Assembly: GCF_006345805.1 (NCBI RefSeq)
Contig: NW_021833607.1
Coordinates: forward strand, 1-58,632
Source of the DNA: Octopus sinensis
Taxonomy: Eukaryota
Reading direction: 5' to 3'
Length of the DNA: 58,632 bases
Below, in pieces: positions 2,339 to 2,850 of the stretch (position 1 is the stretch's first letter; every line of letters begins with the position of its first letter). The notes below the pieces were generated by a model. The model was not told the origin of the DNA and searched no databases. It worked only from the letters and a program-made list of their open reading frames with translations. The translations under genes were made by a program, and so were the position numbers.

Positions 2339-2850
2339 CAGTTTGCAGTCGGACTCAGCTTTAATATAATCACCAACGTATCTCAAGAGCAATGAGCTCA
2401 GTTTACTATTAGACTCAGATTCGCCAAGATCATTAATACATTTCAAATGCAGTAGGCTCAGTTTACTCTCAGACTCAGTTTAGCCTTGATAATCAACGCG
2501 TGTCAAGGGTAATGGGCTCGGTTTGCTGTCAGACTCAGCCTAGACTCAGCTTTACTATGATAATCAACGCATCTGAAAAGCAATGGGCTCAGTTTGCCTC
2601 ACCGTGATCAGTGCATCTCAAGAGCAATGGACTCAGCTTTGCTATAATCATCAACACATCTCAAAGGCAATTGGCTCAGTTTTCTGATAGATTTAGCTTT
2701 GCAATGATCACCAATGCATTTCAATTACAATGGCCTTAGTTTACTTTCAGACTCAGCTTTGCCATGATCATCAACGCATCTCAGGAGTAATGGACTCAGT
2801 TTACTGTCAGACTCATCTTTCTCAAGACCAGCAAGGCATCTCATGAGAAA
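2339..2850 (+). repeat. 60-bp minisatellite (~9 degenerate units) derived from Helitron/PIF1 helicase coding sequence
   Basis: Period of 60 (units start at 2339, 2399, 2459, 2519). Unit consensus translates QFTVRLSFAMIINASQEQWA, versus the PIF1-type motif [18 protein letters not shown]. Confidence 0.8.

Follow-up and report, generated by a model that had tools for sequence, protein, structure and literature searches.

The question raised by this locus is how a short minisatellite came to be built from units that translate into something close to the catalytic motif of a transposon helicase, and whether its period of exactly 20 codons has any meaning. We addressed this question in a stretch of 58,632 nucleotides from Octopus sinensis (contig NW_021833607.1, positions 1 to 58,632), hereafter called the window, which is A+T-rich (36% G+C) as a whole and contains many microsatellites and much transposon debris. 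A preliminary description of this DNA, made from the sequence alone, had reported about nine diverged 60-bp units at 2339–2850, had likened their consensus peptide to an 18-residue motif of PIF1/Helitron helicases, and had regarded the amplification of an in-frame motif as unusual, possibly recording rolling-circle slippage or an earlier in-frame repeat expansion.

When the sequence was cut at the recurring CAGTTT, the array resolved into nine head-to-tail units at 2339–2856 on the forward strand, six of 60 bp and the others of 71, 44, and 43 bp (table 1). In its head-to-tail copies of a unit between approximately 10 and 100 bp it is a minisatellite; here the founder period is 60 bp and the copy number nine. 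The start given in the preliminary description was exact, whereas its end at 2850 falls short of the last unit. Its count of about nine units was borne out by Tandem Repeats Finder, which reported a 60-bp period at 2383–2538 and 2630–2843 bridged by 43-bp variants at 2543–2683, by self-BLAST of the array region (E = 1.6e-41), and by the unit alignment; its consensus peptide was also recovered exactly, the unit consensus CAGTTTACTGTCAGACTCAGCTTTGCCATGATCATCAACGCATCTCAAGAGCAATGGGCT being translated as QFTVRLSFAMIINASQEQWA. The units are 75–92% identical to the consensus and 55–84% identical to one another. A 26-nt core of the unit had three matches in the window, compared with 0 expected from shuffles, and all of them lay within the array; neither core matching nor self-BLAST found a further unit copy outside the array in the 58.6-kb window. 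In the unit alignment, unit 4 showed an 11-bp internal duplication of AGACTCAGC-like sequence and unit 5 a 16-bp deletion, and unit 6 lacked 17 bp between two GACTCAG direct repeats; these length variants (2519–2676) would be explained by slippage at short direct repeats within the unit. Unit 9 closes with 6 nt (ATATTG) that belong to the original downstream sequence. In addition, units 1–3 and units 6–8 were 79% identical over 187 bp, compared with 67% for adjacent units, and this closer likeness between distant units suggests block duplication.

Table 1. Positions of the array units, the helicase-derived flanks, and associated Helitron features in the window
Feature	Positions	Strand	Details
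Upstream helicase-derived flank	2190–2338	+	ILLR LRNGAKLTINDM..., frameshift, then CFVSGISLGPNNMLLVHNRV
Unit 1	2339–2398	+	60 bp
Unit 2	2399–2458	+	60 bp
Unit 3	2459–2518	+	60 bp
Unit 4	2519–2589	+	71 bp
Unit 5	2590–2633	+	44 bp
Unit 6	2634–2676	+	43 bp
Unit 7	2677–2736	+	60 bp
Unit 8	2737–2796	+	60 bp
Unit 9	2797–2856	+	60 bp
Downstream helicase-derived flank	2857–2984	+	Matches profile positions 137–162
Candidate Helitron 3' terminus	3146–3175	+	Hairpin TAGCCG-agaagcgc-CGGCTA, spacer CCTCTG, CTAA, then T
(TA)n-rich microsatellite	3176–3349		Abuts the candidate 3' end
Second Helitron helicase fragment	30659–30904 (ORF 30635–31093)	+	Contains ...YPFEFINSLTPSGMPPHRL

The helicase comparison used relatives that were retrieved with the second helicase fragment of the window, located at 30.6 kb, as bait. 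A profile of 172 positions covering the helicase C-terminus was built from 60 relatives of the Octopus Pif1-like fragment P0001, and the unit consensus proved equivalent to 18 helicase residues, read within 49 residues of the profile consensus around the motif. In a frameshift-aware alignment to this profile, the unit consensus scored 33.1 bits, compared with 8.8 ± 1.7 bits for dinucleotide shuffles (z = 14.6; none of 400 shuffles reached the score), and plain HMMER gave 18.4 bits (E = 6.6e-8 for one test). When both strands of the whole window were scanned with the profile, the array at 33.1 bits ranked second after the 30.6-kb fragment (57.7 bits), and the best unrelated position scored 28.0 bits. 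A plain six-frame hmmsearch of whole frames also placed the array next after the 30.6-kb fragment, with an i-E of 0.005–0.09 only, and was replaced by the frameshift-aware alignment with shuffles. An exhaustive HMMER search with P0001 found 9,345 relatives, and the four full-length relatives that were tested all carried Helitron_like_N, PIF1, and Pif1_2B domains, which indicates that the family is Helitron RepHel and not cellular PIF1.

General databases gave a different picture. A Pfam scan of three forward-frame translations, a consensus trimer, and two stitched peptides returned no relevant match; phmmer of the stitched peptide against PDB sequences returned only a spurious fimbrial match (E = 0.21), with no cellular Pif1 structure matched even at E ≤ 10; and a word-indexed search of 5.8 billion predicted proteins with the stitched peptide found nothing. 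The Pfam result is explained by the lack of an adequate Pfam model for this stretch: among five long relatives that were scanned, UvrD_C_2 covered the motif region in P0056 only, at 25.9 bits against a cut-off of 27.4. A negative Pfam result at the C-terminal motif of Helitron helicases therefore means little, because no usable Pfam model covers it. The preliminary description had made its reading depend on a match of the unit consensus to Helitron/PIF1 profiles; Pfam alone provided none, whereas the purpose-built profile of relatives matched strongly. Together with the flanks described below, these scores support the proposed descent of the unit from the 18-residue motif of a Helitron PIF1-like helicase.

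The sequence on both sides of the array continues this likeness. The upstream flank corresponds to profile positions from about 48/59 to 110, from the Pif1 2B domain as far as the residues immediately ahead of QFP; the frameshift-aware alignment begins at 2202, equivalent to profile position 59, and the ILLR extension (2190–2201) was matched by eye only. A tblastn search with P0001 of Octopus bimaculoides (residues 114–154) matched 2270–2386 with E = 0.008, the second-best match in the window. Immediately ahead of the first QF, 14 codons spell SLGPNNMLLVHNRV, compared with SLSDANILFTLNRL in P0001, and the ungapped anchored score of these 14 residues against P0001 was reached by a fraction of 1.7e-5 of the 117,182 six-frame positions in the window; with seven other relatives the corresponding fractions were 1e-3 to 1e-2. 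Likeness to the octopus family also appears in SLGPNNMLLVHNRVQF compared with SLSDANILFTLNRLQF of P0001, the C-terminal end of which reads ...LNRLQFPLRLAYSMTINKAQ. Alone and unanchored, the upstream flank was not significant against profile positions 1–110 (46 of 400 shuffles reached its score), and the remnant is therefore claimed only from about 2190/2202. The 60 bp upstream of unit 1 were also considered as an older tenth unit, with 44% identity to the consensus; this reading was rejected in favor of helicase residues because the in-frame translation shares only 2 of 20 residues with the unit, compared with the P0001 match at p = 1.7e-5. A remnant reaching further upstream than approximately 2190 (e.g., MPNRHFN..LQLNV, about 2070–2150) showed a by-eye likeness only and is not claimed, and FPVRL at 1365–1379 and FAETINKNIGSS at 1447–1482, in a region that is not among the alignment peaks of the window, were treated as chance.

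Downstream of the array, 2889–2984 reads ...VKKPVLFHDHLQLGNSRIRKSR...KERVRM, compared with a 20-residue stretch and ...KVKV in the profile. A tblastn search with the profile consensus in a 2-kb search space matched this flank with E = 0.001, and the flank alone scored 16.6 bits in frameshift-aware alignment, a score reached by 1 of 400 shuffles. When the array was collapsed to one unit, the upstream flank, the unit, and the downstream flank aligned with profile positions 59–158 with two frameshifts; the score was 42 bits if native unit 1 was used and 53 bits if the consensus unit took its place. Background over both strands of the window peaked at 28 bits, and the shuffle maxima were 27–30 bits. 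HMMER gave the stitched peptide E = 7.4e-12 for one test, and when X was put in place of the unit residues the stitched flanks still reached E = 0.0065 for one test, the flank scores being somewhat inflated because the reading frames were picked by the alignment itself. These alignments place the array between two collinear, helicase-derived flanks, both of which carry stops and frameshifts, and show that the locus derives from the PIF1-like SF1B helicase of RepHel. In a tblastn search with 155 relatives at E ≤ 0.1, no match was found in 1–2000, an absence that in a fragment carries no weight for or against membership; missing Rep and helicase sequence upstream is as expected for a 5'-truncated or eroded copy.

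A candidate Helitron 3' terminus was observed about 160 nt past the helicase remnant on the same strand. The canonical Helitron 3' pattern, written as a 6-bp stem with at least 4 G/C, a 3–10 nt loop, a 4–12 nt spacer, CTRR, and T, with parameters that were set after the site had been seen, occurred only once on both strands of the 58.6-kb window, at this site. The folding energy of the hairpin was ordinary (z = 0.18), so that stability lends no support to the terminus. The CTAA is followed by T and the (TA)n tract; the 5' end, where a TC terminus and the other half of the target would lie, is missing. Helitrons prefer to insert at A|T target sites, and the (TA)n tract is likely to be the AT target of the original insertion.

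The founder of the array had apparently been inactivated ahead of its amplification. In the founder unit, T, I, A, and E stand in place of residues that are nearly invariant in relatives outside the profile-building set, namely P (80/82), T (63/73), K (67/69), and G (51/60), and the lack of these four implies that the copy had lost key helicase residues before amplification. The array boundaries point to how the first duplication may have occurred. The eight internal junctions read ...TCTCAAGAGCAAT|GGGCT|CAGTTT, the left array boundary ...ACATAAT|AGGGTG|CAGTTT, and the right array boundary ...TCTCATGAGAAAAT|ATTG; each junction is thus a chimera, which agrees with the right boundary as far as AAT and with the left boundary once GGG begins. 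Such a structure would result if two A[T/A]AATA repeats, spaced about 60 bp in the unduplicated sequence, had served for slippage or for microhomology-mediated repair; it implies that the unit-final WA descends from the RV before QF and that the final IL of unit 9 represents the original T-L of QGQTL. The microhomology extends over only 5 of 6 bases and is read from sequence decayed by approximately 20%, so the breakpoints are soft. The duplication in unit 4, the deletion in unit 6, and the likeness of the two blocks fit continued slippage or unequal exchange.

Thus, we proposed that the array was born locally, at this locus, by a 60-bp duplication in a dead, 5'-truncated Helitron copy, followed by slippage or unequal exchange and neutral decay; this is the best explanation overall, and we hold it with considerable confidence. 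The existence of the array, its origin from a helicase, its in-situ location flanked by collinear sequence, and its neutral pattern of substitutions are shown; the mechanism of duplication, the order of events, and the 3' terminus are inferred. A Helitron rolling-circle transposon would have inserted here, probably into the (TA)n tract, and what survives would be a 5'-truncated and decayed remnant on the forward strand (about 2190–3175) that comprises the C-terminal end of the PIF1-like helicase and the 3' tail. A 60-bp piece spanning the 18-residue motif would have been duplicated in tandem once the key residues were lost, probably by replication slippage or microhomology-mediated repair at the short A[T/A]AATA repeats. 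Growth to nine units may have involved further slippage or unequal exchange, possibly including duplication of multi-unit blocks, and the array would then have gained internal indels at short direct repeats and drifted neutrally since. Rolling-circle slippage, which had been suggested earlier, is not needed; the array is still in situ, bordered by its own flanks, within an already decayed copy. The mean distance of the units to their consensus was JC 0.213. The repeat calibration for Octopus vulgaris equates JC 0.09 with approximately 25 My and JC 0.2 with approximately 56 My (PMC13282606); if this rate applies here, the amplification is tens of millions of years old. In the same O. vulgaris repeat annotation, a Helitron burst is placed at JC 0.09, compared with about 0.21 for the array units (PMC13282606), and the sequences most similar to the flanks and the unit are those of octopus Helitron families (PMC13282606; O. 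bimaculoides fragments P0001–P0004 and P0006). The locus offers a clean and datable example of a minisatellite arising from a short part of a dead transposon gene in which the two parental flanks can still be read, and the case could illustrate microhomology-seeded tandem duplication.

The alternative that survives best is that the array is a feature of the family, older than the insertion and produced, for example, by slippage in rolling-circle replication, and that it was spread by nonautonomous elements bearing it. Helitrons and Helentrons frequently harbor tandem arrays internally and disperse them (PMC12628747, PMC7492417, PMC12001565), and in the relative P0027 three tandem copies of approximately 80 aa of the helicase C-terminus, including the same motif, indicate that duplications recur in this part of the gene. 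However, the window contains no second copy of the unit, the helicase copy is 5'-truncated, and the units have diverged from one another as old local duplicates would. In word-indexed searches with the stitched peptide and with an alignment of three-unit blocks, no protein among 5.8 billion predicted ones resembled a single unit or a three-unit block, which is weak evidence because decayed arrays are not called as genes. We consider this alternative unlikely. A little less likely again is the related proposal that the 60-bp unit, originating in RepHel coding sequence, is the monomer of a minisatellite or satellite family that array-bearing derivatives of Helitrons have dispersed in octopus; if this were true of octopus genomes, a coding-sequence origin would be added to the known seeding of satellite DNA by Helitrons.

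Tandem repeats and satellites that derive from internal segments of transposable elements, including gag/pol and central portions of DNA transposons, are a recognized class (PMC12628747), and they share with the octopus array a short internal piece of a dead element that became tandem in place, slippage or microhomology, unequal exchange, and neutral drift. The octopus array differs from TE-derived satellites of that class (PMC12628747) in being confined to nine units at one locus in the window, which makes it a minisatellite and not a satellite family, and in having a helicase catalytic motif as its source segment. Central arrays have been described in Helitrons and Helentrons, including Cg170 and related repeats of oysters (PMC7492417, PMC8268682), DINE-TR1 in Drosophila, and the 166-bp Heli2Xen minisatellites in Xenopus (PMC12001565). 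The shared feature is a tandem array physically tied to Helitron sequence, here in a molluscan genome; however, those arrays are noncoding central or terminal parts of mostly nonautonomous elements that were spread to many loci by transposition, whereas the octopus array consists of RepHel coding sequence, retains its own coding flanks, and shows no dispersal within the window. In plants, rolling-circle tandem arrays of truncated Helitrons have been described (Xiong et al. 2016, as summarized in PMC12628747). According to that summary, these arrays likewise consist of Helitron sequence in tandem copies, but their repeat unit is an entire truncated element that includes the 5' end and measures from hundreds of bases to kilobases (PMC12628747), whereas the octopus unit is a 60-bp piece from inside a gene, followed by a single 3' end and with no repeated termini. 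In the literature searched on Helitron-borne repeats, no array built from the RepHel helicase motif was reported. This source is a detail of origin and not a new kind of element; the array is an ordinary transposon-derived minisatellite, and it matters little beyond annotation.

It was also considered that the remnant might be the pseudogene of a cellular PIF1 helicase gene and not of a Helitron, since the motif belongs to the whole PIF1 family and no Rep-domain sequence adjoins it. We regard this as very improbable. The unit and its flanks match an octopus repeat family among whose relatives are full-length proteins bearing Helitron_like_N, PIF1, and Pif1_2B domains, the stitched peptide matched no solved structure of a cellular Pif1 even at E ≤ 10, and a Helitron-type 3' end pattern follows the remnant. 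In addition, cellular PIF1 has H where the Helitron-type TINK has N, and the unit keeps this N.

A further possibility was that the array expanded in frame while it was translated, in RepHel or in a domesticated helicase, and decayed only later. The period of exactly 20 codons would fit such an origin, as would the phase that is kept within the blocks of units 1–3 and 7–9; however, the prior chance that a period is divisible by three is one in three, and the founder consensus already lacks the near-invariant P, T, K, and G. The preliminary description had called for synonymous and nonsynonymous differences among the units to be compared, and the outcome was neutral. The 94 differences from the consensus hit the three codon positions 32, 28, and 34 times (chi-square p = 0.74). 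Of them, a fraction of 0.255 is synonymous, compared with 0.236 if changes were random and followed the observed transition bias (p = 0.63); there is thus neither a third-position nor a synonymous excess. Seven of the changes create stops, stops occur in 7/9 units, and three units break the frame, their lengths not being divisible by three; the flanks carry stops and frameshifts as well. Hence neither the open frame nor the purifying selection that would mark a translated in-frame protein repeat was found, and the array decays neutrally. The statement that the diverged, stop-containing units are not coding now is fully upheld, with the addition of the frame-breaking indels, and the array has no coding function. 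By contrast, the idea that the in-frame 20-codon period was unusual or meaningful was not supported: the neutral pattern, the inactivated founder, and the broken frame indicate that the period is best read as incidental, and a once-translated expansion is even less probable than a cellular PIF1 origin. A practical caution follows, in that repeat units translating to a recognizable catalytic motif can mislead gene finders and domain scans.

Finally, the suggestion that the helicase likeness is chance and the array an unrelated minisatellite, to which the empty Pfam, PDB, and word-indexed searches might lend some color, is refuted by a z of 14.6 with 0/400 shuffles, E = 6.6e-8, and independent collinear matches in both flanks.

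The second Helitron helicase fragment, at 30.6 kb, is in a very different state of preservation. It is 66–86% identical to six Pif1-like 2B-domain fragments, five of which are from O. bimaculoides (79–86% protein identity), and it was detected by tblastn with E = 1.7e-37. The likeness breaks off at ...PPHRLNQL, at about profile position 45, and the sequence beyond is unrelated. The possibility that this fragment and the array remnant are halves of one element was rejected, as the strand order is wrong and the decay very different; the 30.6-kb fragment is separate from the array and much younger, and the array-bearing copy is much older and more decayed. Among the predicted Helitron helicase proteins retrieved as relatives, P0007, P0009, P0011, and P0027 contained internal segmental repeats, and P0007 and P0011 return to earlier sequence immediately after RRQFPLR. 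These repeats may be artefacts of gene models that run across tandem copies of an element, or genuine duplications close to the motif.

Several other elements were observed in the window. A Penelope-like element remnant occupies 31519–33754; its ORFs at 32214–32792 and 32714–33202 terminate in a GIY-YIG domain (Pfam, 22.6 bits), the C-terminus of which recurs as a partial inverted copy at 32071–32280 on the reverse strand, and the remnant is bracketed by identical inverted 72-aa ORFs at 31519–31737 (forward strand) and 33536–33754 (reverse strand). A Tc1/mariner-type transposase fragment was found at 34261–34612 on the reverse strand (DDE_3, E = 9e-5), containing ...FQDDNEPIHTAKVV..., and the forward-strand ORF 10014–10469, with a zf-RVT reverse-transcriptase C-terminal zinc-binding domain at 21.7 bits, below the cut-off, is probably the tail of a non-LTR retrotransposon. 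At 23522–23866 on the forward strand, tblastn matched residues 2–116 of P0014 (E = 3e-16), residues 15–80 of which gave a sub-threshold Pfam match to HTH_32 (29.3 bits against a cut-off of 33.7); it is probably a further fragment of a DNA transposon and has no relation to the helicase. Neither the Rfam scan nor the tRNA scan of the window returned anything. A 184-bp unit occurs as tandem dimers or trimers with an 83–90% match at 12489–12861 (forward strand) and, in the opposite orientation, at 26774–27269; it contains GTTCAAATTCC, which resembles a tRNA B-box, and may be a SINE-like repeat, with no match to this unit from ARAGORN or Rfam. Very long and imperfect tracts of (CA)n/(CACATA)n, about 1.5 kb in length, were observed at 20256–22694 and at many other sites, together with abundant (TATC)n and (TA)n arrays, and these tracts yield spurious long ORFs of up to 812 aa in the mechanical ORF list.
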